Source: Hemiscyllium ocellatum
Taxonomy: Eukaryota
Assembly (NCBI RefSeq): GCF_020745735.1
Contig: NC_083409.1
Location: 48,876,048-48,940,047 of the forward strand
DNA length: 64,000 nt
Direction: 5' to 3'
Positions 1-64,000 of this stretch are shown one piece after another (the first letter of the stretch is position 1; every line of letters starts with the position of its first letter). The notes beneath the pieces were generated by a model. The model saw only the letters and a program-made list of their open reading frames with translations, ran no database searches and was not told the origin of the DNA. The translations under genes and the position numbers were made by a program.

Positions 1-39
1 AGCCAAACATTATTTACACTTCTATAACTCTTCATATTT

Positions 40-2064: not shown

Positions 2065-2232
2065 AGGGGACTGTTGTGTCATTAGAGAGGTGATTGGTGG
2101 TTATTTAACCTGAGGGTCACGATACCTCAGACAAGGGGAGAAGCTGTGAAGGTTGATGGGAACTGAACCTGTGCTGTTGGTAAAACACTGCAATGCAAAC
2201 CAGCCATTAGCCAAAGGAACTAACTAATCCCC
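2065..2232 (-). mobile_element. tRNA-like SINE remnant (family B)
   Basis: Reverse complement shares gtgaccctcaggttaaa.. accacca with 63095-63280. Confidence 0.5.
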
Positions 2233-4714: not shown

Positions 4715-5740
4715 ATTTTGTTTTATTCAGTCATGCGATGTGGTGTCCATGACTGGGACAGAATTTATTGCTGAATCCCAGTAACATTGAGAAGCATGTA
4801 GTGAGCTGCCCTCTTGAACCACTCCAGTCCATTTCGTGTAGGTGCACCCACAATGCTGCTGGGGATGCACCTCCAGGACTTTGACCCAGTGACACTGAAG
4901 GAATGGCAGAATATTTCCAAGTCAGGATGGTGAGTGGCTTGGATGTGAACTTGCAGGTGGTGGTGTTCCCTTGAATCTGCTGCTCTTGTCCTTTTAGGTG
5001 GAAGTAGAAATGAGTTTCGAAGGTGCTGTTTATGGACACCTGATGAATTATCTTGTAGATAGTACACACTGCTGCTACTGAGCATTGATGGTAGATGGAT
5101 TGAATGTCTGGATGTGGGGTCAATCAAGCAGGCTGCTTTATTCTGATGATGCCAAGAGTCTTGCTGGATTTGCACTCCTCCAGGTAAATGGTGGCTCAAT
5201 AATTAGCACTGCTGCCTCACAGCTCCAGGGACCCAGGTTCGATTTGAGCCTCGGGCGACTGTCTGTATGGAGCTTGCACATTTCTCCCCCCTGTTTGCGT
5301 GGGTTTCCTCCGGGTGCTGTGGTTTTCTCCCACAGTCCAAAGATGTGCAGGTCAGGTAAATTGGTCATGCTAAATTGCCCATAGCGATGTATAGGTTAAG
5401 TGCATTAGTCAGGGGTAAATATAGGGTAGGGGAATGGGTCTGGGTGGGTTACTCTTCAGAGGATAGGTGTAGACCTGTTGGACTGAAGGGCTTGTTTCCA
5501 CATTGTAGGGATTCTAATTCTAAAAATGAAATGGACAGTATTCCATCATGGTCTTGACTTGTACCTTTTAGATGATGGATAGGGCTTTGGGGAGTCAGGA
5601 GGAGAGTTCTTCGCTGCAGAATTCCTAGCTTCTGACCTATTCTTTTAGGCACAGTATTTAAATGGCTGGTTCATGGATGACATTGGGATGTTGATAGTGA
5701 TGAATTTAGGGATAGCAATCCCATTGAATGTTGATGTTTA
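4715..5740 (-). mobile_element. CR1-group LINE 3' fragment split by an HE1 SINE
   Basis: Reverse-complement match to the 3' end of the 35320-37190 family; the sequence resumes after 5525. Confidence 0.7.
5190..5522 (+). mobile_element. HE1-type shark SINE (V-SINE group)
   Basis: tRNA-like head (ttagcactgctgcctcacag...ggttcgat), V-domain core (gggtttcctccgggtgct...cccacagtccaaagatgtgcaggt) and CR1-like tail ending tgtagggattctaattct. Confidence 0.85.
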
Positions 5741-5779
5741 GATATGATTTGAACTAAAAAGGCATGTTATAAAGTTTAA

Positions 5780-5956
5780 ATATGTGTTGCTGGAAAAGCG
5801 CAGCAGGTCAGGCAGCATCAAAGGAACATTCCTGAAGAAGGGCTTATGCCCAAAACGTCAATTTTCCTGTTCCTTGGATGCTGTCTGAGCTGCTGTGCTT
5901 TAACCAGCAACACATTTTCAGCTCTGATCTCCAGCATCTGCAGACCTCACTTTTTA
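5780..5956. mobile_element. Penelope-like terminal hairpin remnant with degenerate hammerhead core (5832-5859, +)
   Basis: Inverted arms tgtgttgctggaaaagcgcagcag / ctgctgtgctttaaccagcaacaca. Core CTGAAGA-A-GGGC-TTAT-GCCC-AAAA-CG-TC has G12>A. Confidence 0.75.
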
Positions 5957-7702
5957 CTGGATAGAGGATTGGTTGACTAACAGAAAGCAAAGAGTGTGGA
6001 TAAATTAATGCTATCCTGGCTGACAGTGACTAGTGGTGTGTTGATGTTGGGACTGCAATTATTCACAATGTATATAGATGATTTGAGTTGGGGACCATGT
6101 CTAGTGTGTCAAAGTTTGCAGATGACACAGCTGATGGGTAGCAGAGCAAAGTGAGCAGAGGATTGTGAAACTTTGGAGAGGAACACAGATACATTGAGTG
6201 AGTGGGCAAATGTCTGGCAGATGGAATACAATGTTAGTACATGTGAAGTCATCCATTTTGGTAGGAGTAACAGTAAAAAGGATTATTATTTGAATGGTAA
6301 AAGATTGCAGCATGCTGCTATGCAGAGAGACCTGGATATCTTTGTGCATGAATCACAGAAGGTACAGCAGGTAATTAAGAAGGCAAATAGAATTTTGACT
6401 TTCATTGCTAAAGCAATTACGTTTAAAAACTTGGGAGATTATGTTACAGCTGTACAGGGTGCTGGTGAGGCCACACCTGGAGTACTGTATGCACTTTTGG
6501 TCTCCCTTACTTGAGAAAGGATGTACTGGCACTGGAGGCAGTGCACAGGAGGTTCACTAGGTTGGTTCTGGAGCTGAGGGGGTTGGCTTGTGAGGAGAGA
6601 CTGAGTAGACTGGGATTATATTCTTGGAATTCAGAAGAATGAGGTGGGATCTTATGGAAACATATGAAATTATGATGGGACTGGATAAGATAGAAATACG
6701 GAGGATGTTTCCATGGGCAGATGAAGTTAGGATAAAAGGGTATAGCCTCAAAATTAGAGGGAGCAGATTTAAGACTGAATTGAGAAGGAACTTGTTCACC
6801 CAAATGGTTGTAAATCTATGGAATTCCTTGCCCAGCGAAGTAGTTGATGCTACTTCAGTAAATTTTTAAAGCTAAGTGGAGCCGCAGGTAGATAGGATAG
6901 TGAAGAAGGCGTTTGGTATGCTTTCCTTTATTGGTCAGAGTATTGAGTACAGGAGTTGGGAGGTCATGTTGCGTCTGTACAAGACATTGGTTAGGCCACT
7001 GTTGGAATATTGTGTGCAATTCTGGTCTCCTTCCTATCGGAAAGATATTGTGAAACTTGAAAGGGTTCAGAAAAGATTTACAAGGATGTTGCCAGGGTTG
7101 GAGGACCTGAGCTACAGGGAGAGGCTGAACAGGCTGGGGCTGTTTTCCCTGGAGCATTGGAGGCTGAGGGGTGACCTTGTACAGGTTTACAAAATTATGA
7201 GGGGCATGGATAGGATAAATAGGTAAAGTCTTTTCCCTGGGGTTGGGGAGTCCAGAACTAGAGGGAATAGGTTTAGGGTGAGAGGGGAAAGATATAAAAG
7301 AGACCTAAGGGACAACTTTTTCACACAGAGGGTGGTACGTGTATGGAATGTGCTACCAGAAGAAGTGGTGGAAGCTGGTAAAATTGCAACATTTAAAAGG
7401 CGTTTGGATGGGTATATGAATAGGAAGGATTTGGAGGGATATGGGCCAGGTGCTGGCAGGTGGGACTAGATTGGGTTGGGATATCTGGTCAGCATGGACA
7501 AATTGGACCAAAGGGTCTGTTTTCATGCTGTACATCTCTATGACTCTATAAATCATTTTTTGACCAATAACGGAATTAAGGGATACGGTGAGAGTATGGA
7601 TAGGTGGATCTGCATCCATGAAAAACCAGCCATGATCTTATTGAGTCAGCCATGATCTTACAGCCAGATGGCCTACTTCTGCTCCCATTTCTTGTGTTCT
7701 TA
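5957..7702 (+). mobile_element. CR1 LINE ORF2 3' half with 3' tail, interrupted by a younger CR1 at 6875-7550
   Basis: RT motifs SKFADDT, WANVWQMEYNV, EVIHFGR and RDLDIFV; tail gatggcctacttctgctcccatttcttgtgttctta. Confidence 0.85.
6875..7550 (+). mobile_element. 5'-truncated HER1-like CR1 LINE nested inside another CR1
   Basis: ORF ...LYKTLVRPLLEYCVQFWSP...ERVQKRFTRMLPGL; tail ctgtacatctctatgactctat. The host LINE resumes immediately after. Confidence 0.88.
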
Positions 7703-8914
7703 TCGATGTTAGAGAGAGAGAGAGTCAGCTGGAAACATCTGTTGAATCAGGGAACCTTTTGCCTCAACAGCTTGCTTTGACCAGCAGCTTCAAACAGAGC
7801 TTTTACTAAAACCAAACTAAACCAGACAAAAATCCTGAACTGGGAGAACTGGCCACTCCCCTTTCATTGTACAAGTGTTTGTGAAAAAAAACCTTGAAGC
7901 CTTTTCCTGATTATTGCCTTAGTCAGTATCTGTTAGCCATTAGCAAAGTCCCTAAACCCAGACAAATCTGAACCTCTGCCTTTTACAACCCCTCTTGAAA
8001 AAAATAAGGACAACATAACCTTGTTAAAGGAGCACCATTGTCACAAGGGAGATGTTATAACATTGGGAACATGGGTCATTGTGGGAAGGGAGGTCATCAA
8101 TGGTCACAATCAGCCTGGCCCTAATGCGGGGTGAGGGGGTTAATACAGAATGATGGTTATCATGGCTTGGCTGTAGGAGGTAAGCTCAGGAGGTAATGTT
8201 GAGAAATAACATCATAACTCAAAGTGCTGTGAGAGAATGTTTGGAAGCTCAGTACTGATGGATTAACAGTTAGTGCAAGGAAAAGAACATGGAAGTTTGG
8301 AGTGGGCCCTTGTTTATCACTTTGGGTCTGCAATCTATTGTACCAACCATGACTTGCATTGCTTTCAACACTCATGTGAGGTAAACATGTACATTGGAAT
8401 TGGACATTAGCTCCTCTCACATATGTGGGTTCTACTTATAAGTTACATGAGGGAAATTGCATTAATCAGGCATTTTCACAATGTGGATTGAAGTAATCTC
8501 TAAATGTAGTACCCATCATCTAAAAAGCATAGGGTGACCAATGAAATAGAAAGCCTGGTCGCAAGCAACCTTGGCTATGTAATTGGCCAATGCAAGTGAA
8601 GGTAGTCAACTCTGTGAAGCAGAGTTAATTAATACATAACCTTAAGAGTGGCCCCAGCAGGTCAAGATCTCAAAAGCTGCACAGGAGCTTAGAACTGATT
8701 TCGTCTCACCTTGAAATGCACGTATTCGCCAATTTTGTTCTTATATACAATATTACCTTTTTTGAGTGATGTTGGGGCAGTGGGGGGGAGGTGTGAGGAC
8801 AAAGTATCAGTAATTATACAATATTTAAAAATCTCCTGGTGTATTTGTGTAACAAAGTTGTGTTGCATTCATTGGAAGAAGGACTATGCTGAACCATCAA
8901 TAGCTGATACCTTA

Positions 8915-9240
8915 CAAGGATGGTTATCAGATACAAAGGTGACCATGTGACCATGGCTGATGACTCAGTTCCACAACCCTATTGACTACAGCCAAGTGTA
9001 GATGCAATGCAATCCATTTTTCAACCAATATCATTGTGGTGGAGATGATAGGCCTGCTGAAGGTGAGGTTTCAATAGTTGGATCAACATGTGGACTGTGC
9101 AGCATAATCCTAACATGCTGTGCTCTGCACAGCTGGAACAGGCAAGAAAAAAGGGGCTTTATGGATTCTGAAGAACTGGGAGATCAGCAGCAGTCTTTCG
9201 AGGAGGAAGTTGAGGAAATTGAGCAAGAGGACCATCATCT
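8915..9240 (+). mobile_element. Harbinger/PIF DDE transposase (HARBI1-like) pseudogenic fragment
   Basis: Frameshifted motifs GWL..., PWLMTQFHNP, VEMIGLLKVRF and IILTCCALH, followed by an acidic tail (EEEVEE). Confidence 0.65.
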
Positions 9241-11905
9241 TCAGCATGGACAGTGCTGCAGCATCAAGTACAACAAGTCAGAAGGACTTAATTGACATTC
9301 AATTCCAATAGATGTGACCTGGGTGCACTCATTAATTGCCATTTTATGTAGGTCAAAAAGCAAATAGTTTCTCTTTGTTCCCAGAGGCAAATTAAGCTTT
9401 TGTTCATTGTTCACTTTTATTGAAGTTGAATAAAAGCAAATGGTTTGAAAGCTTTCCAGTATGTTTTAGTCCCACATTCAACAGTAAGAGGATGGTGGGC
9501 TACACTGGGCATTGGGGAAAGACTATCACGCCCTTAGACGTGGTTCTAAGATGACTGGATGCTAAGGATGGATAAGCTTTCTAGCTTGCTTGTTAAGGAG
9601 CAATGAGATGTGATTGTGCACTTGTATGTGTCTGCCATGCCACATTTGTACCATGAAAAGTTTTGGTTACCCTCCCACTACATGCACAGGGAAGAGCAAC
9701 CCCTGACTGGCACAGCTGAGTTTAAGGGTAGTGCTAGGACCAGGAATTCCAGAGGTCCTGGCAGTGGCTAGAGCAAGGATATGATGCGCATGGTGCCATG
9801 AGTGAGGTGCATCGGCAACAGGATGAATTTCAGAAAATAGCCTGGGAAATTTCTTCAGGGCGTACGGAGAGAAATCCTCCTTGAAACTCAACAAAATTGA
9901 CATGAGCTGTAAAGTTGTTCTACTTCCCTGCAGAAAAAATATTTAACATTACACTAAGCTGCAGCCTTTTGATGTCATCAACATTGTTTATTCTCATTGT
10001 TTTCATTTTTCATTTTTAAATAAGTTTCTGCGAAGGTTGTGAGAAGTTGTTCAAAGTGCCTTTGGAAACAACTGACAAAATATTGTAGCAAGCAGAACAG
10101 ATCATTAATTAAACACACACACTCTAGTGTCTGCATTACCTATGAAAGATACTTTGGAATAAACCATGTTATCTATTCAAATTCACACTAACATTTGAAA
10201 TGGATACTACATCTAAAAGGCTAAAATTTATAATTCTGACAGAAATGCCGAACAAATATAATTCCATGCATTCAGTAGTTTGAGTTGTGTTATTCTTATT
10301 TTTAATGTGCATTTTTATATACAACTTCTATTGTACTTTAGATCTTCCCAAATAATGGCTAATTATGTAATGTGCACCCATTTCGAGTAGTTGTATCTTT
10401 GCCCAGAGTTACCAATGGTATGCATTTATTAAGATTCTTTGCATGTCACATATTGCTTGCTAACCCTAACATAACACCACTGGAGAACAGCAATAGCTCT
10501 GATAGCGAGACAGGATATAAATAAAATGTCTTTGCCACCAATTTTTCAGGGCAAGAAGAGCTAATTGTGGAAACCAAAAGATGCCTGATCGAACATTGGG
10601 TCACATGTTTTCCGGTTATTTGGTGCTAGAAGCATGTAAATAAGTGTTGTGAAATGGTGTGTATAACTGTAAGTTGGCACATCTTAAAATGCTGTCAAAC
10701 ATCACTAGCCTTTAGATAGCGTAGTAGCCCCATAGGACTGTAGTCAGAGTACAGCAGCAGCCCTCCAACGCAGAGGTACACACTTCGCTTCCCAGTTATT
10801 GTGACATAAACAACCCACACTATCATTTACCAATCCTCATTTTATGATTGGCACGTTATGTCAAATAGAACGGTGTAACAATGAGAAAGCCAACACATAC
10901 TTTAGGCCTCCTTACCAAATGAAATACCCTTAACCTAAGCCGGTTCGTTCAGAATTCTTCTTTAACTGCTCTGTGCTGTAGATAGTGTTGCCATCGAAAT
11001 GTCTGTTTGTTTATTTAAAAAAAGAGGACTGGAGCAGTAGGCGTATGTTCTGGCTCCGTAATGTTCTGATAATCTACATCCTTGCTGCAACTCACACCTC
11101 TAGGATTTACCTCTCACTGTATGAGACTAATATACTAGTTGTTAATGCGTGAAATGCACATATGTTGTTATCTTGTTTCAAGTGCATTGTAATTGAAAAT
11201 GTTGTTTCTAAGCCTATATTAGAAAAATCAAGAGATGTGGATCTGTTCTTGATACATTCTGGGCAATTAGCATTAATGTTTGACAAGAAACAGTTACAGA
11301 GAACCTTTTGGCTCAGTAGGTAATATGCACTTCCTGGTGAGGCTCTGAGCCATAGGCTGAATTTTATAGGACACCTGAGGGTTGGGAAACAGACCGATGG
11401 AGCCATAAGTTTGGCTGCATGCCAATGCCTATCTGCAAATGACAACACTACCACAATTTTATGAGTGGCAGGGGTAGAGTTGATGGGTACCTCATCAGTG
11501 GACCAACTAAAGCTCTTATGTAGGAATTAATGCCAAAGAGAACTGTTTCAGCTTCTCTCATCTTTCTCTGTAATTGAAGACTTAACAGGATTTGCAAACA
11601 ATGCTGTGGGAATGGTATTGTTTCTTGTTAAATTCTAAATCTTGGAGCATAACAGAAGTGCCAAAAAAAATTGTAACAGGAGATAAAAATGTACGCTTCA
11701 TTTCCAAACATCTGGGTGATTCACTTTATGCTGTTCGTAGTGAGCTCAGCATATTCCTTTCATATGTTCCCACATTAATTATTTTCCTGCAAGTTCCTGA
11801 TACTGTAAATTTGTATAGGGTTTAGTTACTATAATTGGGGGCTTGAAACCATAGGATATGCCATGTCAAGGCAGGGTGATTCCTACCATGGTCATGACTC
11901 CTAGT

Positions 11906-12123
11906 AGAAAGTGATGACTGCAGATGCTGGAGATCAGGGCAGAAAATGTGTTGCTGGAAAAGCGCAGCAGGTCAGGCAGCATCCAAGGAGCAGGAGAGTC
12001 GACGTTTCAGGCATGAGCCCTTCTTCAGGAATCCTGAAGAAGGGCTCATGCCCGAAACGTTGACTCTCCTGCTCCTTGGATGCTGCCTGACCTGCTGCGC
12101 TTTTCCAGCAACACATTTTCAGT
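11906..12123. mobile_element. Penelope-derived palindromic element: 89-bp arms (11942-12030 / 12032-12120), hammerhead cores on both strands
   Basis: 87/89 arm complementarity. Starts with the Penelope end agaaagtga.gactgcagatgctggagatc. Flanking direct repeat tcatgactcct at 11892-11902 and 12126-12136. Confidence 0.88.
12034..12061 (+). ncRNA. Minimal type I hammerhead ribozyme motif (Penelope-type)
   Basis: CUGAAGA-A-GGGC-UCAU-GCCC-GAAA-CG-UU. Mirror core on the - strand at 12001-12028 ends in GUC. Confidence 0.65.
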
Positions 12124-12699
12124 CCTCATGACTCCTCCCATGATCACTGATTTCAGCTGTGTCCTCCCATTTTCACAGGGAAATTCTAGGTTGGGGCAAA
12201 GGCCAAACCTTTAAATCTTTATTTAATTCAGTTTCTAACTCAGAATCAGGCTTTTATCATTACGTGTCCACAATTCACCATCTCTCCATCTACAGTTTTC
12301 ATTTTATGGCATATTTGAAGATAAGAAGTTAATGATGAAGATTCATGAATCAGTGACTTATTACCATCTTCAGTGGCCTTGGCAGTTCCAAGTGCTGTTT
12401 GCTCTGTGGCTTTGGGTCAGTAATTCTGTGCACCATCTCCTCCAAGGTACTATGGACATGCATCTGTGCAATTCATGCTCTTTGCACTTTTTCCAAGAAG
12501 GCAGCATGTCAATTAGTGTAAGTATGATTGAGTGATATGCCCCTTGCAGTTGTGGAGGCGTTTAGAGGTGTGAGTGTGGCAGGCATGATTGGGATGAGTC
12601 TGGCTAAGGTATTACAATGCTAGTGGTAAGATCTGGGTACCCAGAACAGCTTCTGGGTGTGGGACGAGACTGTCAAAAATTGAGAAATGTGAAAGGTAG

Positions 12700-13000
12700 T
12701 TGGTGAGATGGGTCTCAGATGTGGTGCTTAGATGCATTCACTCCTCTTGACCATGCAAGTGAGCTTTATAAATCTCTTTTGGCATTGGTGCCTGGGACTT
12801 GGAGATAAGCAGTGTGCATTCACCACCATTGCCATGTCTCCCATACCCTCCAGAGGTTCAATTTCACGAGCTGCCTGCCTATCATGGCACATGGCCTCCT
12901 TTGCAGGCTCCACCTGTCTGCCCAGTGCCATCAGGCTGGCCTTGTTAAAGCTGGAGCCCTTTCCGTTGTAATATTGACACCCTCTGTCCCAGAGTGTTCC
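12700..13000 (-). mobile_element. Harbinger-associated Myb/SANT-like DNA-binding protein remnant
   Basis: ORF 12728-13156 contains KGSSFNKASLMAL..QVE and MAMVVNAHCLSP..HQCQKRF, typical of Myb/SANT-like Harbinger ORFs. Confidence 0.55.
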
Positions 13001-16000
13001 CATATGTTTATCAATTGATCTGTAATTTATTGCTGCAACTTTGTTTTTCGTATTCTTTTGAAAAGAGGAAGCTGCTAGAGCATTTGGTTTCTTTAGAACT
13101 CTCCTTGATCCTCTGCAGAGTGCAGAGACCTCACCTCCAGAGCCACTTTTGGTCATGTTACAATTCGGAAAATTAGGTGAGTACTTGAATTTTACATGCT
13201 GCCTGTCTTCCGAACAACTGACTCAGGCAGGTATCGAATTGTGGTGCCCATGCCCAAAAATCAGAGCAAATGAATTTTTAGCCCAGTGGCCCTAAAGGTC
13301 AAATTGTTGCAAAGTGAATTTTTTGCAACAATACTTTCCGGTTAATGAAGTTATATATTTTAGACATTTTTGAAAGGTTTTTCTGTGGCTGATAGTGGCT
13401 CTTCTGGTATCTTCTAATTACAGCGGTGAACCAGTCTGTTAAACAAATGGGAAACATTTAAAGCTCCAGACTGATCGTCACCATTTCCCTGGCAGGTTTC
13501 TGAACTCTGAGCTTTAAGCTAACACTAAGTTCAAGGAGTTCAGTATGGTCACAGTTGGGTCATTAGTTGTGACGATGCAGAATGAAGTTTTCAAAAGACT
13601 CTGCACCAGTCTGTCCGATCCTAGAAATAGTGGGAATTTCATCAGAGATCCAGGTGTTATTACATTGATGGTTTTCCTTAATATTCTTGTCTTGTTTCAT
13701 GAGCTGTAGGAAAACTCATTATTTAGACCTTGTGAGACTGTGTTAACAGGGTGCTAAACCTTAAAGGACATTACCAGTTCATTTCAATCCTTCCCTTGCT
13801 CAGTATCCACAAGAGTATACTTTGTACTGGCAGTCTTTGGATAATGGATCAGATTGGGAAATCTGGCTAAATTTTCCCATTGTTAGCCCAGGGTCCTTTG
13901 GCGGCATGTAATTCATTCCTGATCTGTGTGGCAAATGGCTAGTGCACTCACCAATCGAGCTGTCAGGAGAGCTCTTTGCTTTACACTTTCAAGTGTTTTC
14001 TTTGCCGATGTGGTTACATCTGCTCGCACCTAGTTAACATGTCAAGTAATTTTAATTTCACTGCTTCTTATATTTTGTGGTCACAGTTCACTTGTGAACA
14101 CTGTTGATCCAGCAGACAGGGAGAGCTGCTGTTCCTACCACACTATAAAAAGTTGAATAATTAAACTTTAAACACTTCTGGCTGCATTAGTAAATCGTAA
14201 GTATGGAGCTTGAAAAATCATGTTTGTTTTGTAGGGACACCTTGTAGAGAAACCTTTGGAACTTGCAGTTCACTCAGATTTAAAATACTTCCAGACAACA
14301 AAGTGTCTTTCATCAGGACACTCTGTTGGAAGTGGGTGCAGTTTCTGGAATGTGCTTTAGTTGGATTAAACCAATATTTCAATGTCGCCTTCATATATGT
14401 AAATAATGTAACGAACAAAATGATTTATTTTCCCTCTCAGAATCAAAAGGGCGAATGTATATGCTAGTAAAACGCCAGGATTGGCTCATGGTTTTCCTGG
14501 TTAGTTATTACAATGTCAAATAACACTGGAGAAGACCCAGGTCGCACCAATATAAAATGGATAGACATTGGCGTCGTCTCAAGTTTGTGACAGGTGCATG
14601 TCCTGAACCATCCTCATCTCCATGCATGGTGTGAATGGCTGACACCAATTACACCTCCTTATCCAAATGGTTACCTAAATGATGAGCAATATCAGACAGT
14701 GGCTGTTCTCAGATGAGTTTTGGTGATGGTTTTGGAGTAAGCTACATGCTGTAGAGTTGGAGAATCGTCCTGTTTATTCTCGTTTCACTGGGATGATTTA
14801 AATAAATCTACGTTTGGCTTTAATTGGTGGCCAAATCAGTTGTGCCTGATGCCTGATCTTCTCATTCAGTCCTAATTTTGGCAAGTTGTCTTATAACATA
14901 TGCTTGGCCACACATTTGCCTAGGCAAGGGCTCAAACCATTAAGGGATGCCTGTTATATGGCCCCATGAATTTAGCAGCAGGACTAATGCAAGTGTATAT
15001 TGAGCCTTGCTGGAACCATGTCTCAATAGAACATTTTATACCCATTGGACACTTGAGGAATAGTACAGTGTCAGCCAATTTCTACCTTGGATTTCATAGG
15101 ACAGGATTTTGACTGTAATATAGGGGTGGGTTTGAGATAAGTGAGGAAAGAGGGGATTTGGAGCAATTTCACATCAGGAGCAGAATGGCTGCATACCCAT
15201 TCATATGTGACAGGTAGCTTATTTGGAAACCAATGATCAGAAGCCAATTGGGGGCCTAGTATTCCAGCTCAGTTGGACACCCACCACTCAGTAGGTAGCT
15301 GCAGTCACAGGCACTTGCCCTCTGCACTAGTGGTTTGGCAGTTGTAACCAGTTTTTAGTTCGGATGTTTTAAAAGTGCTGAGATAGTGTGCTACAAAATT
15401 GAGGTGTTTTCTCTTTCTCTTCAACCTTCAACAGCAGGTTACAGTCACTTCCTTGCTGGAGAGCTTACTGTTAGCCCTCTAAGCTCAAGAATGTAGTAAA
15501 GTATCCTCTGGCTGTTAATTGGCCAGTTAAAGTAAAATTGATGTTGGGTGACTGTTCCCAACATAGTAGGGGTCAGGTCTCTCATTTAATCCTGATGTAA
15601 TCCTGACCCAAAATACTGTATCAGATTCTTCTCTAGTCCAGTTTATAAAAATCTTTCAAAATATTAGAGTTGATGATGTGAAATATTTGTATCAGTCATC
15701 AGAGGCACAGATGCGAAGTGTCCATTGTGCAAAAATGTGCATGAAAATGAATTTTCTTTGAGAACAGGGTGATGACATTTTTGAGCTGGTTTTTAATCCA
15801 GCCCAGACTGACGTGATCAAAGTTTCCTCTCGGTTGGTAATGTTCGCTATGATAAATGCTTATGAAACAGTTCCAACAAGCATGACTGTTTTGCTTCAAA
15901 ACACATAATTTGGCAATCTTACTCATCGAGCATGTAAGGATGTGGGGAAAATGGAGATTCTTAAGGTTGGACTGAGGTACATTGCTGAGGAAGTAAAGAA

Positions 16001-16289
16001 AGAAAGGACAGAACATATTTCTGAGATTTCTACTGCACTCCTTCAAATCTTGCAGCAAAAAGGCCTGAGAAATAGATCCAGAGACCTTGGTTCTGCCTTT
16101 GTCATTATTTTCCAGAGATGTGGCATGGGAGGATATCCCCCTGACTTGGACAGACCCTCCATTCACCATGACTCTGATCTGATGGATGACGAAGAAAGGT
16201 CACAAGCTAGGAGTCTCTATCCTGTTTCTCTGATCTCAGTGGGGCAGAGTAGATCAGCATATTTAAGAACATCAGTTTCATCCAGGGTT

Positions 16290-17675
16290 TTTTAAAAAAG
16301 TTGCCAGTGAGGCAGTTATTGCATTGGTTTTAATTTTCCAAAATTCCTTAAATTTGGGAGAGGTTCTATTACATTGGAAAATAGCAAATGTAACTCTTTT
16401 ATTAAAAAAAATAGAAGACCGAAAGCAGGAAACTACAGGCTAATTAGCTTAACTATTCCTCAAAGGGAAAACGTGATTATTATTACAGATATTTTAGCCT
16501 GTATAATACTTGGAACGAGGGCCAGATGGATCTCATTTGATTGTGACGTCCTTCATTGACTCAGGTTAACAATCCCAATCAGGGAGCTCTGGCTGACAGA
16601 TATAAGCAGGAGGTTCAAACAGTCTCTTCATTCTAGGGACTGGCCCTGAGCTGGCTAGTCAGAGCTTATGTACTGTGTACATATAAATAAAGAATGATTT
16701 GGTGATGGGATATTGGCCACCGGGCAGTTATTTCAGCCAGACACTTAGATAAATCAATGTAATCAAGCAACACCAACATGGTTTTGTGCAAAAGAAATCA
16801 CATTTAACCCATTTTTTGGAGGTCTCTGAAAAATAGCCTGTATAGTAGATAAAGGGGAACTTATTAATATACAGTATTTAGATTTATAAAGGCATTTCAT
16901 AATCTACAACACAAAGGTTTTCTGGAAATTAAAGCTTCTGCTGTAAGGAGTAACCCGACATTGGCATGAATAGGAGATTGTTTCTTGTTTGTAAGCCAGA
17001 GAGTTGGCATACTGAGTCATTTTCTGGTTGGCATGGCTTTATTAAGAGGTGCCAGTGCTGGTGGTCTAACTGATTATTATATATATATATAATTAATTTG
17101 GATGAATGGACCAAAAAGGTAGGAAAGCAACTCATGAATAGGACCTAAGTCTGAAACAGATATTGATACACTCAATGAGTGGACATAGATCTAACAAATC
17201 GAGCATAATGTGTGAAAATGTGAAATTTTCCATTTTGGCAATAAAAATTTTAAAAAGGCGCATATTATGTAAATGGTGGGTGAGACATTGAAAACATTGA
17301 AGATACAGAGGGATCTGGATAGCCAGCATTTGGATTGCAAATGGTTAGTATGATGGCATAGCGAGTAATATTGGATCCTCCGGGTTCTTGACAGGGTCAA
17401 TGTGGACAGGATGTTGCCTGTCGGAGGGGAATCCAGAATTAGGGATTTAAAAAGAAGGGGTTGCTATTTTAAGAAAGAAACAAGCCATTTTTTTACCCTC
17501 AGTGGATCATGAATCTTTCGACTCATGACTGTGATGGAAGCAGAGTCTTTTGAAGGCAGATAAATAAATTTGTGATAAATAAGTTGGATAGCGGAATTGG
17601 AGTAATCAGATCAGTCATGATTACATTGAATTGGGGTGTAGGTTCAAGGGGGCAAAGGGGCTACTCCTGCCTCTA
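16290..17675 (+). mobile_element. Old, heavily deleted CR1 LINE containing a solo-LTR-like insert
   Basis: Motifs AGNYRLISLT, caacatggtttt and gtatttagattt...; CR1-type tail ctactcctgcctctatg. Confidence 0.7.
16500..16735 (+). mobile_element. Probable solo LTR (~236 bp)
   Basis: TG...CA ends, TATA-like gatataa, AATAAA near the 3' end and short gcc duplication at the flanks; it interrupts CR1 sequence. Confidence 0.45.
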
Positions 17676-19169
17676 TGTACGTTAGCCTCATTTGTGAAGG
17701 GGTGGGTTTGATCTTCCAGTCAAAGAAATGGTCTAGGCCTCCAAAGAAGTTTTTTTTGAATATTTATTGTCAATTTCTTTTAAAGAAGCTGAAGGGACTG
17801 GAATATTGTTTCTCTGCATGAAGGAATGCAATAGATGCTGGAGTTTCTAGCCTATGTGGGCTTGATTGTATGTCGAACGGCACAAGTAATGGTGTGGATG
17901 CTTGCCAAATCCATGTTAATCAAATGTTCTTTCCTGGAGCCAGGAAGCTGATGCAGAGTCAGCACTGGAGGGTCTGTAGCATATTCCTGAGTAATTTCTT
18001 TTGTTAACTTATGCGAGACTTTAACCTTAAGTGCATAAATTTAATCTTGCAGCTAAAATGGCAAAAATGACCTGTTTTTGTGTGAACATCTTTTCCGATT
18101 AGTACTTTCCAAGCTTTTTCCCCCACTGTGACCCCTTCCCCACCCTCTTCAATGCTTGAGAATCAGTGTGAATCTGGAATGTCAATAGTGAGGGAATTTT
18201 GTGAATGTTTACTGGAGGCCAATGGATGTATCCACAACCGTTTTGAACACTCTGATGCAGTCTTGGAGCTAAGGAACCTATGCATGTGTGTGTTAGAGCC
18301 ATGCTACGCTTCTGTGATACCCACAACATTTTATCTGCCAGTTTCAATCAGTGCTACAAGCTTGTTTACCTTGTTTCGTCCACTGCATGCATTTAAGTCC
18401 AACACCCTCAGTCCTGAATTGACTAACTCCCTTCTTATACTTGTCCCCTCATCTGGTGTGCCTGAAGTTAGATTCCTGACCCTTCCCATGCCCTCTGTGC
18501 TGTTACTTGCTCTAGAAACTTTAATAACCTCTGCTGAGCCCTCTTAAGCATTTAACTTTTTCATATAATTTTGCCTGCAACTGAACCCATTCCCTACACT
18601 ATTTGGCTTAAAGCACTATGTGCAGTCATAGTTATGCAATTTGCAAGGACTCTGGTCCCAGAACGATTCAAGTGGAGTCTGTTCCATTCTTTCCCAATAC
18701 TGTTGCCAATGTCCCTATACCAATCTTTGAGTGGAGATCTTCAAGCAGCCAGCATGTGTTATGGATGTAATCACTATGAACCACAATGGGGTCTACCAAC
18801 TCCCACATCATGCAGTTACAATCCATTGCCTGGCCCAGCATCTCTATTTTAATTACTTAGTTCTTAATTTGATTTTTAGAATTTTCGCACTGGCCTTTTA
18901 TTTTGTAGCCTGTAGATATTTCCCCTGTATATGTTCAATCTGAGAGTAACCTGTAATAGATAGTCAAATCAGTGGCTATCACCAGCCAATAAACTTATGG
19001 TTTACCTGAGATGTCACTTACAAGCTATCAGCCAAAAAATGCAAGCGAAAAGCACCTCTTTCCCTCTGCACTGAATTCCCATACTGCCTCCAAATTCTCC
19101 AAACTATATTCACTCAGGCTGTATCTCAGTGTGGATGCAATCTCTCCTTCCTGATCATACAAAGCCTAT

Positions 19170-19375
19170 TGATATTGCATCCTTGGTGCCAAGGTCTGAA
19201 AAATCAGTGAATAGCAGGGCTCTTTAAGAAGGGATGGTAAACAGCCAGTGGTCATTTGCCTCATTGGTATCAATGTTATTGGCAGAAACAAACATGTAAT
19301 CCTGCAGTCAGAATTGGAGATATAGGTAGGAAGTTAGCAAGAAGAGTCTCAAAAGTAATAATCTCTGGATAACTT
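19170..19375 (+). mobile_element. CR1 ORF1 SGNH-esterase fragment
   Basis: Decayed translation C.LGAKV...DGKQPVVICLIGINVIGRNK..ILQSE...GRKLARRVSKVIISG. Confidence 0.6.
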
Positions 19376-19599
19376 ATTAGATGTGGTGGCTACAAGAAGG
19401 TGATTGGTCTACAGTCAAATGACCAGTTATTGATGACGTACACTTTTTGCCTGCCAAAGACTGTGATTGACTCTCCGGTAATAGCCTACTCATGGGATGA
19501 TTGCTTGTTAAATACCTCTGCCTCTTTATGACTTTTAAACTGCAAATCTTATTTTATTAATATCATGCATAGAGAGCCCTTTGGATATCCGGCGCAGAG

Positions 19600-19985
19600 G
19601 ATTGTGGGTAAGTTGCAAGACTTTCTCATGGCTCTGGTCTTGGGCCTGACCAAGTTAGCCATTGACAGATCCAGGCTGTGGGCAGTAAAGGGGGTCATAA
19701 TTGTTAATTGTCGGCCTCTCTTCCGCAGCTTTATTTCTGCCCAGGTGTCCTGGCAGAAAGATCATGCAGTGTCCACCAATACACTTGATGCCTTTAGAGT
19801 TAGATGGAAATGCAGTGGGTAGACCTAGAGTGCTTTATCTCCCCTTACAATTCCATTTTGAATTTTCTTCCTCCCTCTCTCTCTTATTGGGTTTTGCATG
19901 TAAACTAATCAATTGGAAAATAATGTGACCTAATGATGGTGGTTAATAAATGAAATTGTCACAGATGATTTGATGATGGGAAAAG
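19600..19985 (+). mobile_element. Tx1-clade LINE ORF2 C-terminus and 3' UTR
   Basis: LVLGLTKLAIDRSR...CRPLFRSFISAQVSWQKDHAVSTNTLDAFRVRW; UTR homologous to the repeats at 61618-63080. Confidence 0.6.
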
Positions 19986-19989
19986 CTAT

Positions 19990-20260
19990 TAGGTTGTGGT
20001 AGCCTAGTGGTATTGTCACTGGACTCATAATCTAGGACATCAGGCTATATCCTGGCAATGTAGGTTAAAATCCTGCCCTTACTGGTGGTGAAATTGGAAT
20101 TTAATATAGGGGCCGTCTTGTGGTGCAGCACTAGCATGTCTGCCCCTAGATCAGGAGGCCTGAGCTCAAATCCCATCAGCTCCAAGGGTGTATAATAACA
20201 TCTTGAACATATTGATTGGCAAAATAGGTTAAATATTTAAAAAATATAAAAATCTTGAGA
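19990..20260 (+). mobile_element. Deu/SacSINE1-like head with a nested tRNA-like SINE (family A, ~20108-20228)
   Basis: gtggtagcctagtggtattgtcactggact head, then ggggccgtcttgtggtgcag...gaacatattgattggc, which matches family A at 61431-62382. Confidence 0.5.
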
Positions 20261-20639
20261 TTAACTGATAACAGCAGTTACTGGTGCCATCCAATAATTG
20301 CTGAAGTATTTCGATATTGGAGTGGACGTGTCATCAGGTAAGCAGGCTGCTTTGCTATAAATGGTGTCATGGTTGTGGGAGTCTGCACTCAATTGAGCAA
20401 ATATGCCTGACTTGTGCCTGTCGATAGTAGACAGGACTTGAGGAGTGATGACGTGAGTTATTCACTGCCAGATTCCTAGCCTCTGACCAACTCATGGCCA
20501 CTACTTATTTTGGCAAATCTCAGTTCGGCTTCCGGTCAATGGTGACACCCAGGATAGTTGCAGTGGGAGAATTCAGTGTTGTAACACTATCGTACATCAA
20601 GGAAAGATGGTTAGAATCTCTTTTGTTGGAGATGGTCAT

Positions 20640-20960
20640 TAGATTAGATTAGATTACTTACAGTGTGGAAACAGGCCCTTCGGCCCAACATGTCCACACC
20701 AACCCTCCGAACAGCAACCCATCCAGACCCATTCCCCTACATTTATCCCTTCACCTAACACTAAGGGCAATTTAGCATGGCCAATTCACCTAACCTGCAC
20801 GTTTTTGGACTGTGGGAGGAAACTGGAGCACCTGGAGAAACCCACGCAGACACGGGGAGAATGTGCAAACTCCACACAGGAGTTGCCCGAGGCGAGAATT
20901 GAATGCGGGTCTCTGGCGCTGTGAGGCAGCAGTGTTAAGCACTGTGCCACTGTGTCGCCC
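20640..20960 (-). mobile_element. Young full-length HE1-type SINE
   Basis: Head gggcgacacagtggcacagtgcttaacactgctgcctcacagcgcc, V core and (AATCT)n tail seen as agattagattagatt; CpGs retained. Confidence 0.9.
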
Positions 20961-21060
20961 ATTGATTGGCATTTTTTCCAGTCTAAGCCTGGATATTGCT
21001 GCAAATGTGTTGCTGGTCAAAGCACAGCAGGTTAGGCAGCATCTCAGGAATAGAGAATTC

Positions 21061-48714: not shown

Positions 48715-49785
48715 AGAAAGTGAGGTCTGCAGATGCTGGAGATCAGAGCTGGAAATGTGTTGCTGGAAAAGCGCAGCAGGTCAGGCAGCATCCAAGGAGC
48801 AGGAGAATCGACGCTTCAGACATGATCCCTTGTTCAGGAATGAGGAAAGTGTGCCAAGCAGGCTAAGATAAAATGTAGGGAGGAGGGACTTGGGGGAGGG
48901 GCTTTGGAAATGCGATAGGTGGAAGGAGTTTAAGGTGAGAGTGATAGGCCAGAGTGATGGTGGGGGCGGAGAGGTCAGGAAGAAGATTGCAGGTTAGGAA
49001 GGTGCATCGTTGAGTTCGAGGGTTGGGACTGAGATAAGGTCAGGGGAGGGGAAATGAGGAAACTGGAGAAATCTGAGTTCATCCCATGTGGTTGGAGGGT
49101 TCCTAGGCGGAAGATGAGGCACTCTTCCTCCAGCCGTCATGTTGCTAAGGTCTGGCGATGGAGGAGTCCAAGGACCTGCATGTCCTTGATGGAGTGGGAG
49201 GAGGGGTTGAAGTGTTGAGCCACGGGGTGGTTGGGTTGGTTGGTCCGGGTGTCCCAGAGGTGTTCTCTGAAACGTTCTGCAAGTAGGCGGCCTGTCTCCC
49301 CAATGTAGAGGAGGCCACATCGGGTGCAGCGGTTGCAGTAAATGATGTGTGTGGAGGTGCAGGTGAATTTGTGGTAGATATGGAATTTGTGGTAGATATG
49401 GAAGGATCCCTTGGGGCCTTGGAGGGAAGTAAGGGGGGCGGTGTGGGAGCAAGTTTTGCATTTCTTGCGGTTACAGGGGAAGGTGCCAGGAGTGGAGGTT
49501 GGGTTGGTGGAGCGAGTGGACCTGACGAGGGAGTCATGGAGGGAGTGGTCTTTTCAAACGCTGAAAGGGGAGGGGAGGGAAATATATCCCTGGTGGTGGG
49601 GTCCGTTTGGAGGTGGTGGAAATGACAACGGCTGATACGATGTATATGGAGGCTGGTGGGATGGTAGGTGAGCACCAGTGGGGTTCTGTCCTGGTGGCGA
49701 TTGGAGGGGCGGGGCTCAAGGACGGAGGCGCGGGAAGTGGAGGAAATGTGGTGGAGAGCAGCGTCGACCACGTCTGGGGGGATAT
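48715..49785 (-). mobile_element. Penelope-like element 3' part with GIY-YIG endonuclease, nested in CR1
   Basis: FTCTSTHIIYCNRCTRCGLLYIGETGRLLAERFREH; degenerate hammerhead at 48810-48837; 18-bp tandem duplication near 49366-49401. Confidence 0.9.
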
Positions 49786-59009: not shown

Positions 59010-60811
59010 CCACTGGTGGATTATTGCATGCAATTCTGGTCTCCTTCCTATCAGAAAGATGTTGTGAAACTTGAAACTTGAAAAGATTTACAAGGATGTT
59101 GCCAGGGTTGGAGGATTTGAGCTATAGGGAGAGGCTGAACAGGCTGGGGCTGTTTTCTCTGGAGCGTCGGAGGCTGAAGGGTGACCTTATAGAGGTTTAC
59201 AAAATTATGAGGGGCATGCATAGGATAAATAGATAAAGTCTTTTCCCTGGGATGGGAACTAGAGGGCATAGGTCTAGCGTGAGAGGGGAAAGATATAAAA
59301 GAGACCTAAGGGGGAACGTTTTCACGCAGAGGATGGTACGTGTATGGAATGAGCTGCCAGAGGAAGTGGTGGAGGCTGGCACAATTGCAACATTTAAGAA
59401 GTATTTGGATGGGTATATGAATAGGAAGAGTTTGGAGGAATATGGGCCGGGTGCTGGCAGGTGGGACTAGATTGGGTTAGGAAATCTGGTTGGCATGGAT
59501 GTGTTGGACTGAATGGTCTGTTTCCATGCTGTACACCTCTGTGACTCAATGTTGGAAATTGTCATCTCATAGCAATTTTTTTTCAGAATTAGATCAATTA
59601 GTGGCCAGAGGGAATACATAAGCTGCCTGTGGATGGTAAGCAGGCTTTCCAAAGATAACGAGAGGCTACTGCAGCCTGCTATTGCAAAAGAAAATTGAGG
59701 AAGGGCACCTTCACCTTGAGATGGCCTCTCAGCAATTGTAAACTGAAGAAATGATTATTGCTGCTGAACCATCACTGTAGAAAGGGAATGCTTCCACAGA
59801 GTGGCCTATGATCAGCACTGCTTTAGCCAGCTAAGAGCAACACCTGAGGAGCTGGGGGAAGGTCCTTTATATGATCCAGGAAAATTAGCGTCCCCCCCAG
59901 AGTTTGCTGCTAGGCACCTGCCTGGCCCTGATGCCATGAAACACCCACAGACTAACTGCAAAATTCTATTGGTCCCCTGATTATTTATCCTCTTAATTAT
60001 CCTCTGGATCAAGTTAACAAACCACCTGTTACTTGAAGGTGGGTGTCATTCCACAACTGACCCAAACTCCAGGAAAATGGCTGTGTCAGGACTATGCAAT
60101 GGAAGCAGCCCATTACCAGCACTGGAACTTTCCTTAACCACTCACCTCTGCTCCCAAAAAAAAATTGGCAGCAAAATCCTGCTCCATGTTAGAGAGATTT
60201 CTTTCCTATTTTTAGTCCTCTCTTGAACACACAAACTTGTGTTGTTAAAGGTTGGGAGCCAACTTTTGCCTCACCCATTCTTTATTTGTCATCCTAGATA
60301 TTAAGGGAGGGTTAATTGCTCAAATCAAGCAGTGGCTGCTGGTCATTTTCTGCTACCATTTTCCACTCCTAAGTGCTGCTGAGTCACTCAACTTTAAGTG
60401 ATTTCATAGTTGCACCTGATCCTGTCTCACCTGATGTTAGTTATGCAGTATTTCCATCAAGGATCACTATGGTCTCAACTGAACAGAAATCCTGCTGGAC
60501 ATTTTTTTCTCTTGCACAGTTGAGGCCAGTGCCATCATTTCCCCTGTAACGTAAATTTGTGATCTTCCAGATTCATTGCCGCAGAGATAATGTTTCTATT
60601 CAGTGTACCAATGGGATTCCATATTTCGGGACCTTATTGGGCAATGCTTAGAGAGTATCTTTTGTCTCATGAATAAAATCCACAAATTATCAGGTGAATC
60701 CAGGGTTCAGGATAAATGCAGTGTCAAAGGGCTTCTGTGGAATACTTCAACTCTGAGAAATAAGTTTGTCAAAGCATAACAACTGTGGGGGGGGTGGGGG
60801 AGGGGTGCTCA

Positions 60812-61325
60812 AAATTGAAATGAAAACAAAAACTGCTGGAAATACTCAGCAAATCAGGCAGCATCTGTTGAGGGATAAGAGAGCTCACATTTCAGATGAA
60901 TGACCTTTTATCAGGCCCATTCTGGTGAGAAATCATGAATCAGAAACATTGGATGGAATCGTGTGAAGACAATGTGAGTCTTGTTTGCTAGCTGCTGAGG
61001 TGGCGAGATATCTGTGTTCCTTCCTTTTGGATCATGACCAGAAGTTGAGGCCAGCAGCGACCTTTCACCTGGAGTCAGGACCCATGGGGTGATGGTCCTA
61101 TTAATCGAGAACTCCTGGCCATTCAGAGGCCAGCAGCTTTTTTTTTGCTCAGCTGTGCCTTGGGGAGGCACAGTGGCTACAGTCAGAATGATGTCAGGAA
61201 TGGCCCAGGCCGCCTCCAAACATACCACTTGAAAGACAGCATATTGTAGCCTTAACTCTCTCTCTGCAAAGATGATGCCTGACATGTTGAATATATCTGC
61301 AAGTCTCTGTTTTCAATTTCAGAAA
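60812..61325. mobile_element. Old Penelope-type inverted ends (60812-60914 and ~61250-61325) around an unrelated insert
   Basis: aaactgctggaaatactcagcaaatcaggcagcatc and its degenerate inverse gatgcctgacatgttgaatatatctgca. Confidence 0.5.
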
Positions 61326-61422
61326 GTAATGTGACTATTATTGTCGGGAAGTCCTAGACTTTTTATTATTCCAAAAAAGAATGAAAAAAATTCAGGAACC
61401 CACCAGATTTGTGCTAGAAAAT

Positions 61423-63087
61423 AGCAGACTCTGGGGGCCCTCTAGTGGTAGTGTTCCTACCCCTGGTCTGGGAGGATCAGATTCAATAACATCTCTGAAC
61501 AGGTTGAATAGAAAATATCTTGAAGCAGAACTTGACCTGATGAGAGCATTGTGTTGGCCTCTCTGATAGATTATACACAATCAAGCTATCTTGCATTGGT
61601 TTTTAAAAAAAGCAGACTCAGCATGTTCGGCTGCCCTTGGACAGAGAGCATGTGGTGTCCATGAATGCTTTCAAAGCAGTTACAGAGGAAGGGGGGCACC
61701 GTGGGGCATTCATGTGCATTATCTTTCCTACCAAATCCATTTTGATTTAATTCCTGACCTCTCTCCCTACCTTCCTCCTCCCCCCACACCCCCACCTTTG
61801 ATGGTTTGTATTGCCCTTTATAGACTTTTGAGTGTAAATATTTAATTGGCTACATGGGTGATTACTCCTGATAGTTAAAAATGTAAAAAAAAATTGAAAG
61901 TCATGATGGGAAGTCACTCAGTTGTACTGATAGCATACTGGGTATAAAAAGCAAGCAGACCCAAATGGTGCTCTTAAGGTGTAGCAGTTGTGTCCCACCT
62001 TGGAAACAGAAAGCCTAGGTTCAGGTCCCACCTCTCCAGAAGTGTGTCATAACATTTTTGAACAGGTTGATTAAAAAGGTACATGTTAAGCAGATCTGCC
62101 CCTATCACGTTTTGCACAGAAATATCTAACTGGCTACAAGGGTGATTTACTAATGGTGGTTAATAATTAAAAGGTCACAGTGATTTGGTCATGGGGACAA
62201 AACAACTATTCAGTTGTATGTGATAGTACTTGTGGATATAAAAAAATAGGAAACACATCCAAAGATGGGCTCTTGAAGCTCCGTGGTATTGTTTGTACCT
62301 CTGAGACTGGGGACTGGTTTTAAGTCCCATCTGCTGTAGAGGTGTGTAATCACATCTTCGAACAGATTGATTAGAAAATATGAAGCAGACCTCCAAAAAA
62401 AAAGCCATCACGTTTTATGTTTTGCATTGCCCTTAACAGGTTTTGAGTGTAAATATCCAGTTGGCTACACGGGTGCTTTACTGGTGATGGTTGGCAGCTG
62501 AAGGAAAAAAATGTAACAGTGATTGGTGATGGGAAGTAAACAAAAATTGTTCAGTTATATGTAAGAGCACTTCTGGATATTAAAAAAAAGCAGACCCAAC
62601 TTGGGCACTGCATGGTGTGAAGTGCTTTATTTTCCCCTTGAGTTTGGTTTTGATTTAGCCCCTTCCTGCTCTCCCTACCTCTCACTCAATTTTGAATTTA
62701 GCGTTACCTTTAACAGCCTTTGCATACAAATATTTAATTGACTATGCGGGTGATTTACAGGGTAACAGATTAAGAAAGAAAAAAAGCCCTGGTGATTTGG
62801 TAAGGGAATAAACATGTTCAGTTGTGAGTAAGAGCATTTCTGTATATAAAAAAAGTAAAACAAAAATAAAAAAAGCATTCTCATTCATCCTCCTCTCCCA
62901 ACCTTTAATGATTTGCATTGCTTGGGCTTTGCATGTAAATTAGTCAATTTGAAACATGGGTGGACCAGTGAGGGTTGATAGAAGGAAAAGAAGATACCAT
63001 GGGTCATTTGTGATGGGAAAAAAAAAATACCTGTTCAGTAGTGTGTGATAACACTTATAGATATTAAAGAGAAAAAAAACAAGCAGA
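61423..63087 (+). repeat. Stack of five Tx1 3' ends and three tRNA-like SINEs (family A) separated by AAGCAGA(C)
   Basis: Tx1 tails at ~61618-61950, 62095-62250, 62391-62587, 62596-62872 and 62880-63080, each ending in an A-run; SINE A at ~61431-61522, 61961-62087 and 62264-62382. Confidence 0.75.
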
Positions 63088-63094
63088 TGCAGAA

Positions 63095-63280
63095 GGGGTT
63101 AGTTAGCTGAGTTGGCTGGATGGCAGGTTTACAATACAGAGTGACAATAACAGCATGGGCTGAACTCCCACATGAGTGGAGGTTATCAGGGAGGTATGGT
63201 GACCCTCAGGTTAAACCACCACCAGTTATCTCTGTCTTATGAAAAAGCAGCTCCATGGTTCAGTAAGACAATGGGAACAT
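63095..63280 (+). mobile_element. tRNA-like SINE (family B)
   Basis: gttagctgagttggctgga head; gtgaccctcaggttaaaccaccaccag core shared with 2065-2232. Confidence 0.55.
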
Positions 63281-64000
63281 TACCGGCCTTCTCTGTGGTG
63301 AAATTTGTCAGTGATTTGGGTGTTTACCAAAACTCAATGATTTCAGACCATCCCTTTTGCTGTTTTCATTCCGTCAGTATTCTTTGCCGCCTAGTTCCAG
63401 GTTATCAATGGTTCAGAAATAAAGCAGACCCTGGAATGCGTCTGCAGGACAGTCTTCCCTGGGCTCGGACTAGGCTATGCATGTCATGAGTAGTGGCTGT
63501 TTTTAGTGTTCAACAATAAATGATGTTCCTTTCTGGTTGGGCTCCCTCTGTTATTACAGTGCTATTTTGATTTGATGTGTAAAAGAACAATCTGGAAGAA
63601 TTCTACTCCTCATATCACAATACAACTGAGAACCTTGTTGCCATTTCTTCAGCAGCTCTGTATGTTTTTGAAACATTTTAATAAAGGAGCCACATGGCTG
63701 GCAGATAATATAAATTGCTAGAGTGCATTTCACAACAGGTTGACTAACAATCAAGAAGCTTAGAATTTAAAGAAGGCAGCTGCTGCACAATATAGCATTA
63801 TCCAAGTTAATTAATAACCCTGAAACCACAAGTGACCTGCAACTTCCATCTGGTTCAGTGCATCCACTCCTTTCAGTCAGAAAATCGCACTAACCAAACT
63901 GAAGCATTTATTTTTGGTGATCTGGAATCCTTCAGTTTTCCAACTCTCCTTCATAGCACTTATAGTTAAGAATCCAGCTGAGTACAGTTCCTCCTTCTGT

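Follow-up and report, generated by a model that had tools for sequence, protein, structure and literature searches.

The window analysed here is a stretch of 64 kb from the shark Hemiscyllium ocellatum (contig NC_083409.1). About 2 kb near its right end are filled by a stack of retroposons, all on the plus strand, in which ten units lie between eleven copies of one short motif (J0-J10; Table 1). The units comprise five 3' ends ("tails", T1-T5) of a long interspersed nuclear element (LINE) family, three copies (S1-S3) of a short interspersed nuclear element (SINE) family called SINE A, an A-tailed insert (unit X) and a last unit which carries a second SINE family; retrocopies of host mRNAs were not found among them. 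An A-rich end directly preceding the motif is the rule for these units. All five LINE tails end in ...GGATAT(A/T)AAAAA, and a first-pass annotation of the same DNA was right in seeing an A-run close each tail just before the motif; it had overlooked two units, namely 61530-61609 and 63088-63414. The stack consists of about ten retro-insertions in the same direction at one duplicated target. It is probably the work of a site-preferring LINE of the L1/Tx1 type acting on a repeated element that resembles a long terminal repeat (LTR).

The motif is composed of an A-run followed by AGCAGAC(Y)C. Five of the eleven copies read exactly AAGCAGAC, four deviate by one change and two are degenerate (AACACAT at 62252, AGCATTC at 62874); degenerate versions had been described before at 62251 and 62873, and both read as described. 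On the plus strand AGCAGA occurs at 61423, 61524, 61611, 61954, 62089, 62384, 62589, 63082 and 63423. These nine copies fall within 2.05 kb (61.4-63.45 kb), where 0.93 would be expected from the plus strand of the remaining window (28 copies in 62 kb; Poisson P = 6e-7), and every one is situated between retroposon units, as the first-pass annotation had claimed for the junctions. The inserts are flanked on both sides by a target site duplication (TSD) of defined sequence. Exact AAGCAGAC is present eight times in the whole window, both strands taken together, and five of these copies are inside the stack, all on the plus strand. The copies outside (27119, 50386 and 55118) were considered as further insertion sites and rejected since neither A-tails nor repeat ends adjoin them. 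Likewise, 63291-63414 and unit X were rejected as copies of the left flank; the stretches before J0, J2 and J10 are unrelated beyond about 20 nt. Of the window's six LINE tails all but one lie within the 2 kb of the stack, as do three of its five SINE A copies; chance does not explain this clustering.

Table 1 Features of the retroposon stack, its right flank and the dispersed LINE tail (positions in the window; ORF2, second open reading frame of the LINE; aa, amino acids; UTR, untranslated region)
Feature	Position	Strand	Basis
T0, dispersed copy of the LINE tail with 85-aa C-terminal remnant of ORF2	19565..19997	+	BLAST, HMMER
J0, left-most target copy: A-rich run, AGCAGAC, TCTGG	61415..61433	+	about 17/19 positions like 63415-63434
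S1, SINE A copy with internal deletion	61434..61522	+	alignment A2, nhmmer, thousand-fold contig depth
J1, target copy AAGCAGA	61523..61529	+	
Unit X, 80-bp insert with A-run at its end	61530..61609	+	near single-copy depth; the window's only copy
J2, target copy AAGCAGAC	61610..61617	+	
T1, longest LINE tail: decayed C-terminal end of ORF2 and 3' UTR, ends in A-run	61618..61952	+	BLAST to 19746-19884, alignment A1
J3, target copy AAGCAGACCC	61953..61962	+	
S2, SINE A copy	61963..62087	+	alignment A2, nhmmer
J4, target copy AAGCAGA	62088..62094	+	
T2, shortest LINE tail	62095..62250	+	BLAST, alignment A1
J5, degenerate target copy AAACACATCC	62251..62260	+	
S3, SINE A copy	62261..62382	+	alignment A2, nhmmer
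J6, target copy AAGCAGAC	62383..62390	+	
T3, LINE tail with about 16 extra bases including an A9 run in front	62391..62587	+	alignment A1
J7, target copy AAGCAGACCC	62588..62597	+	
T4, LINE tail including the last part of ORF2	62598..62872	+	alignment A1
J8, degenerate target copy AAGCATTC	62873..62880	+	
T5, LINE tail; its 3' part resembles the SINE A 3' part most	62881..63080	+	alignment A1, shuffle-tested alignment
J9, target copy AAGCAGA	63081..63087	+	
Last unit: second SINE family (63095-63284) and about 125 bp at single-copy depth	63088..63414	+	
J10, right-most target copy, runs into the original right flank	63415..63434	+	
Repeated LTR-like piece of about 150 bp, target at its 5' edge	63417..63568	+	contig depth, direct reading

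Instead of a target, the motif might be the elements' own 3'-terminal sequence, comparable to the short terminal repeats of CR1-type LINEs and SINEs, with units that are merely adjacent. Inside the array the same picture would be expected, as each unit has the motif after it. Outside the array, however, the motif does not accompany SINE A. Contigs of four runs from three species were aligned to 60800-63799 at a likeness of at least 80%. The summed depth of SINE A reaches thousands, as against about 8-19 for single-copy sequence, and in each run 270-550 contigs lose their likeness to the window at the SINE A 3' end (61520, 62077). What lies beyond this end in the contigs of the three species is AT-rich, agrees with the window at 0.34-0.38 and holds no AAGCAGAC. 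The motif is also absent at the fourth SINE A copy of the window (S0, 20094-20243), as had been noticed already for a copy at about 20108. Thus, the motif is not part of SINE A, and its presence beside the three stack copies reflects the place where they landed. For SINE A an own 3' terminus is thereby largely refuted. Applied to the whole stack, it would need four unrelated unit types with an identical octamer after the A-run, which is unlikely; moreover, the motif is also found ahead of the first unit and at the start of the repeated right flank, and the clustering would be left unexplained. Altogether, we regard this explanation as very improbable. The evidence supports the motif as a duplicated target that is not part of the inserts, in agreement with the first-pass annotation, which had proposed a target duplication at each insertion.

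The core of the site is A/AGCAGAC(Y)C, located just downstream of an AAATAAA box. The left edge of the duplicated target is constant, with the A-run abutting AGCAGAC. The right edge varies and is found after AGCAGA, AGCAGAC or AGCAGACCC, and in J0 after ...CTGG. A constant left and a variable right edge are what a fixed first nick combined with a variable second nick gives. About 17 of 19 positions agree between the outermost copies J0 (61415-61433) and J10 (63415-63434), although the A-rich part of this shared stretch may be tail rather than target.

To the right of J10 the target forms the 5' edge of a repeated piece. Contigs that represent other copies in the genome match the window between 63417, which is five bases ahead of the motif, and 63559; the depth amounts to 55-116 at 63400-63499 and 595-1420 at 63500-63599 (6-140 times single-copy). 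The piece contains AAATAAA at 63417, AATAAA 96 nt downstream (63516) and a ...TTACA end. With this layout the piece, which has the orientation of the stack, would correspond to the TATA/R/U5 portion of an LTR, and it is referred to as LTR-like. Of the features of a solo LTR, repetition, both boxes and the ...TTACA end were seen, but a TG start and a repeated U3 left of the stack were not.

The five tails begin at five different 5' ends (alignment A1), in accordance with the distinct truncation points and the common orientation reported in the first-pass annotation, and two of them, T1 and T4, retain the end of ORF2 homologous to 19746-19884 (BLAST), which had been reported too. Over the roughly 150 shared columns the tails are 59-71% identical to each other and 56-71% identical to T0, which lies 42 kb away and is the only outside sequence in this comparison of pairwise identities. 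The four SINE A copies are 63-68% identical, in or out of the array. Such a star-like pattern, in place of a local clade, favours separate insertions; the sign of tandem duplication named in the first-pass annotation, five tails forming one local clade, was not seen in these identities. A common 5' end of T2 and T3 (ATCACGTTTT), which would imply duplication, was rejected since the multiple alignment starts T2 about 25 nt further in. Between the target copy J6 and the onset of LINE homology in T3 lies the sequence CTCC + A9 + GCC (62391-62406). It may have been left by a minimal insertion consisting of a tail only, or may represent untemplated bases of the 5' junction.

One or two insertions followed by unequal crossing-over between the repeats of A-run and motif could also have built most of the stack. 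The order SINE A-motif-LINE tail-motif appears twice in succession (61963-62260, 62261-62597), S2 and S3 have a head variant in common (ATGG.GCTCTT after CCAA(A)), J3, J5 and J7 share a CCAA extension, and BLAST aligns 61836-62273 with 62120-62609 at 64%. The unit order, the S2/S3 head and the CCAA extensions are equally explained by a target AAGCAGACCC with an extra A at the 5' junctions. Furthermore, amplification is hard to reconcile with five separate 5' ends, with the colinearity of T2 from a later position than T3, with identities that are no higher inside the array than to T0 or among all four SINE A copies, and with unit X and 63088-63414, both unrelated to the other units. At most one duplication of one SINE plus tail unit is allowed by these data, and local amplification as the main process is quite unlikely.

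Contigs of the organisms B and C, which differ from the window by about 4-5%, span J0-J10 entirely with small indels only. Therefore, the complete stack is older than the split of the three species. Shorter arrays in relatives, for which the first-pass annotation had suggested looking, were not found in B and C, both of which hold the complete stack. With units only 60-70% alike, the stack is a very old and inactive fossil, and the locus is without sign of a host function.

Within the 64-kb window no reverse transcriptase or endonuclease reading frame of the LINE family was found, and of ORF2 only the last 85 or so aa remain, at T0 (19565-19819). The contig depth suggests a family of only some tens of copies at least 80% like the stack tails. 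A protein word search with the 85-aa ORF2 end of T0 gave no matches, and JGI metagenomes scanned with a profile of the ORF2 end and with TTGGCTACANGGGTGATTTAC, a conserved block of the 3' UTR, gave none either. An exhaustive HMMER search with the ORF2 end yielded 42 relatives, which share the end ...LLIFGHPV.RGAGRSEDLL.GLLLGLAKLAINRSRQ...CLPLFRGYVRARVSLEKEHAVS...; the closest of them come from EukProt. One relative (P0014) comes from contig L002, where it forms the C-terminus of an ORF2 whose neighbouring pieces match Exo_endo_phos and RVT_1, and another (P0017) has a C..C....H....C motif just upstream of the ORF2 end. The relatives of the L002 ORF2 are in turn ORF2 proteins of vertebrate LINEs, one of them with 40% identity and the pipeline name 'transposon TX1 uncharacterized 149 kDa protein'. 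These relatives of the ORF2 end, not a phylogenetic placement, support an assignment of the stack's LINE family to the L1/Tx1 type.

The related LINEs on L002 and on two further contigs (L001, L003) belong to other organisms and have short and different 3' UTRs. Absence of AAGCAGAC at their 3' junctions is uninformative on the target of the shark family. L002 (ENA ERZ25070917, contig ctg110827_2x_c, 18,092 bp) holds, in 1-10483, two full-length related L1/Tx1-type LINEs head to tail with a period of 6741 bp and 97% identity; the first ends in A38 and the 5' end of the next follows one base later. The 'c' at the end of the contig name may mean that a tandem array was circularised during assembly. 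From this pair it follows that stacking is not peculiar to the shark LINE family.

The SINE copies of the stack had been taken for one family, which was confirmed (alignment A2, nhmmer). Besides S1-S3 and S0, the window contains a fragment at 1902-1983. ARAGORN and Rfam made no transfer RNA (tRNA)-like call on the stack copies, in which only a B-box-like GGTTCAAGTCC was seen, and the majority sequence of the other genomic copies holds a B-box-like GGTTCAAGTCCCACC. SINE A may be tRNA-derived. Its 3' part resembles the LINE tail about 10-40 nt before the A-run of the tail. S2 and T5 are identical at 23 of 28 positions (z = 7.3), and S0 and S3 reach z = 4.2 and z = 3.7 with T5; in none of the three comparisons was the score attained by any of 300 shuffles. 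The likeness is clear with T5 only, as T1-T4 score marginally or no better than chance. The homology between the 3' ends of SINE A and the LINE is likely to be real and would fit a shared-3'-end partnership of the Ohshima/Okada type. In a 2013 survey of 58 SINEs sharing the 3' end with a partner LINE, the shark and ray entries are paired only with HER1 and with LINEs named CR1 (PMC3747384).

The first-pass annotation had proposed that SINE A uses the same Tx1 machinery, and the 3' homology to T5 fits this proposal. SINE A is not a target-specific SINE, as the 3' flanks of the contigs described above are AT-rich and free of the motif; an enrichment of SINE A at the LINE target was not found across the contigs of the three species, and the three stack copies alone sit there. 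S0 itself belongs to a small stack without the motif. At 19998-20243, inside the 3' end of T0, two different SINEs follow each other on the plus strand, a tRNA-like one at 19998-20107 and then SINE A at about 20108-20230.

Two contigs of organism B (X6), neither of them the orthologue of the stack, hold arrangements that are absent from it. In one, the SINE A 3' end is followed by ...AAAAACAGACCCA / ...AAAGAAAAACAGACCCA and then by a LINE tail from the position of 62653, which is a sixth truncation point, and the junction between SINE A and tail is CAGACCCA. In the other, ...AAGCAGA and 15 nt precede the last 40 bp or so of the LINE tail. Thus, the same junction occurs elsewhere.

The stack is best explained by target-primed reverse transcription at one preferred site in about ten separate events. 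With each insertion an A-tailed copy would have been placed directly left of the nick, and about 7-12 (once up to about 19) bases of the target would have been duplicated. Usable target would thereby remain on both sides of the insert, so that further copies could enter at this place in an unchanged direction. The machinery would be that of the L1/Tx1-type LINE, from which half of the units derive as 5'-truncated tails, and this machinery would have copied other RNAs as well, namely SINE A, the A-tailed unit X and the unit with the second SINE family. For SINE A such copying fits, since it shares part of the LINE 3' end. The site would be picked by the endonuclease and not by annealing of the RNA to the target, and the preference presumably belongs to the LINE family as a whole.

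Several observations weigh against this explanation. T0, the only dispersed LINE copy of the window, shows no motif on the 5' side, and at the 3' end the two SINEs interrupt the tail and have destroyed the junction. For the last unit (63088-63414) a clear A-tail was not seen. SINE A is overwhelmingly inserted elsewhere; if it was moved by the same machinery, this machinery is not strictly site-specific. The dispersal of SINE A would mean that the machinery is only site-preferring or that LINE subfamilies with the same tail differ in the specificity of their endonuclease. Concerning the target element, no repeated U3-like sequence was seen left of the stack, where 61300-61399 is at about single-copy depth, and GTGCTA is found at both 61411 and 63569. 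With the latter match the element would measure 150 bp and have its start, which is not a TG, at the target. Both points make the interpretation as an LTR unsure.

A generic hot spot of A-tracts would do without recognition of AAGCAGAC. An L1-like endonuclease with the usual T/A-rich preference would have cut first at an A-rich native site (TAGAAAAT/AGCAGAC) and later in the existing poly(A) tails, and the TSDs would share the downstream bases all the same. The variable right ends of the TSDs are as with L1, every new A-tail offers a good site of the L1 type, the small stack at T0 with its two same-direction SINEs (19998-20230) is free of the motif, and SINE A is found in AT-rich sequence genome-wide. 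However, A-runs are everywhere in the window and yet most of its LINE tails and SINE A copies are crowded into one spot of 2 kb, and in organism B there is at least one other locus where SINE A is joined through CAGACCCA to a tail with another truncation point. A mere A-tract hot spot is therefore considered unlikely, even if its probability is appreciable. The preference of the L1/Tx1-type LINE for the duplicated target can also be put in a more far-reaching form. In the shark, an endonuclease of this type would recognise AAGCAGACCC where it directly follows the TATA-like box of a short repeat resembling an LTR. A SINE of the tRNA type would have acquired the LINE 3' end, then lost its restriction to the target and reached thousands of sites rich in AT. 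Taken as a whole this is doubtful and rather unlikely. If true, the inserted copies would be placed behind a foreign promoter, and the triangle of Tx1, LTR and SINE would be one not described for cartilaginous fishes.

Many elements of the Tx1 clade show a target preference, and two Tx1 families prefer LTR retrotransposons (Kojima 2015; PMC4494074). As criterion for a sequence-specific non-LTR retrotransposon, one kind of sequence in >20% of the flanks was used in that study. In crocodilians, one site in Mariner-N4_AMi is used by both Tx1-Mar and SINEU-3, and the TSD there measures 16 bp. Sequential insertion was invoked to explain SINEU-3 copies that lie in tandem 'sandwiching a TSD', and a LINE-SINE partnership was inferred from the shared target (PMC4494074). 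The shark stack is similar in that a LINE of probable L1/Tx1 type and SINEs occupy one site, probably inside another transposon, with tandem inserts around a TSD. However, the target is Mariner-N4_AMi in the one case and AAGCAGAC(C)C on the border of a short LTR-like repeat in the other. SINEs of the SINEU-3 type have heads from small nuclear RNA (snRNA), whereas SINE A may be tRNA-derived. Of the SINEU-3 copies 90% occupy the target, in contrast to the dispersed SINE A. The stack in the shark, with about ten units, is deeper, and its host is not a crocodilian. Among known systems, Tx1-8_Crp and Tx1-4_AMi also come close. Xenopus Tx1L in Tx1D, Keno (U2 snRNA) as well as Kibi and Koshi (microsatellites) are Tx1-clade elements with sequence-specific insertion into repeated targets (PMC4494074). 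Their targets are different and their cases rest on many copies, whereas the shark case comprises one locus and indirect evidence. It was an overstatement of the first-pass annotation to call specificity and partnership unrecognised, since site preference of Tx1 elements in transposons including LTRs, sharing of the site by SINEs and tandems around a TSD have been published (PMC4494074). The insertion logic is known, and the new points are its occurrence in this host, the sequence of the target and the stack's depth. Same-direction tandem retroposons with a TSD that starts in the A-run and is of variable length are likewise produced by L1/Alu insertion into existing poly(A) tails. That process is not known to involve a fixed non-A sequence or to pile up ten units at one spot.

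Further repeats lie in and around the stack. The second SINE family at 63095-63284 corresponds to the reverse complement of 2035-2231 and is very abundant, with a depth of up to about 53,000 in the bin 63200-63299. In many contigs 46-79 bases are missing from the stretch between about 63124 and 63200, which indicates that most copies lack a segment present here or belong to a shorter subfamily. Half a kilobase upstream of the stack, about 100 bp at 60800-60899 reach a depth of 11,000-21,000 and have weak copies at eight other places of the window on both strands; this is another high-copy SINE-like element. On the minus strand, 49145-49771 contains an open reading frame of 208 aa rich in P/T/S (...LVLTYHPTSLHIHRISRCHFHHLQTDPTTRDIFPSPPLSAF...) and an overlapping one of 155 aa; this has the appearance of a coding end, now decayed, that belonged to a further family of retroelements.

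In annotation, stacks of this kind can pass for tandem repeats or for 'new' repeat families of composite structure, and each target copy should be taken as a boundary at which to split them. The stack is a natural record of a site-preferring LINE that reuses its own target duplications, with ten events at one locus in which the truncation points and TSD lengths are still readable. If cartilaginous fishes carry transposon-targeting lineages of the Tx1 type as crocodilians do, this would bear on the age of the habit and on the evolution of endonuclease specificity in LINEs.

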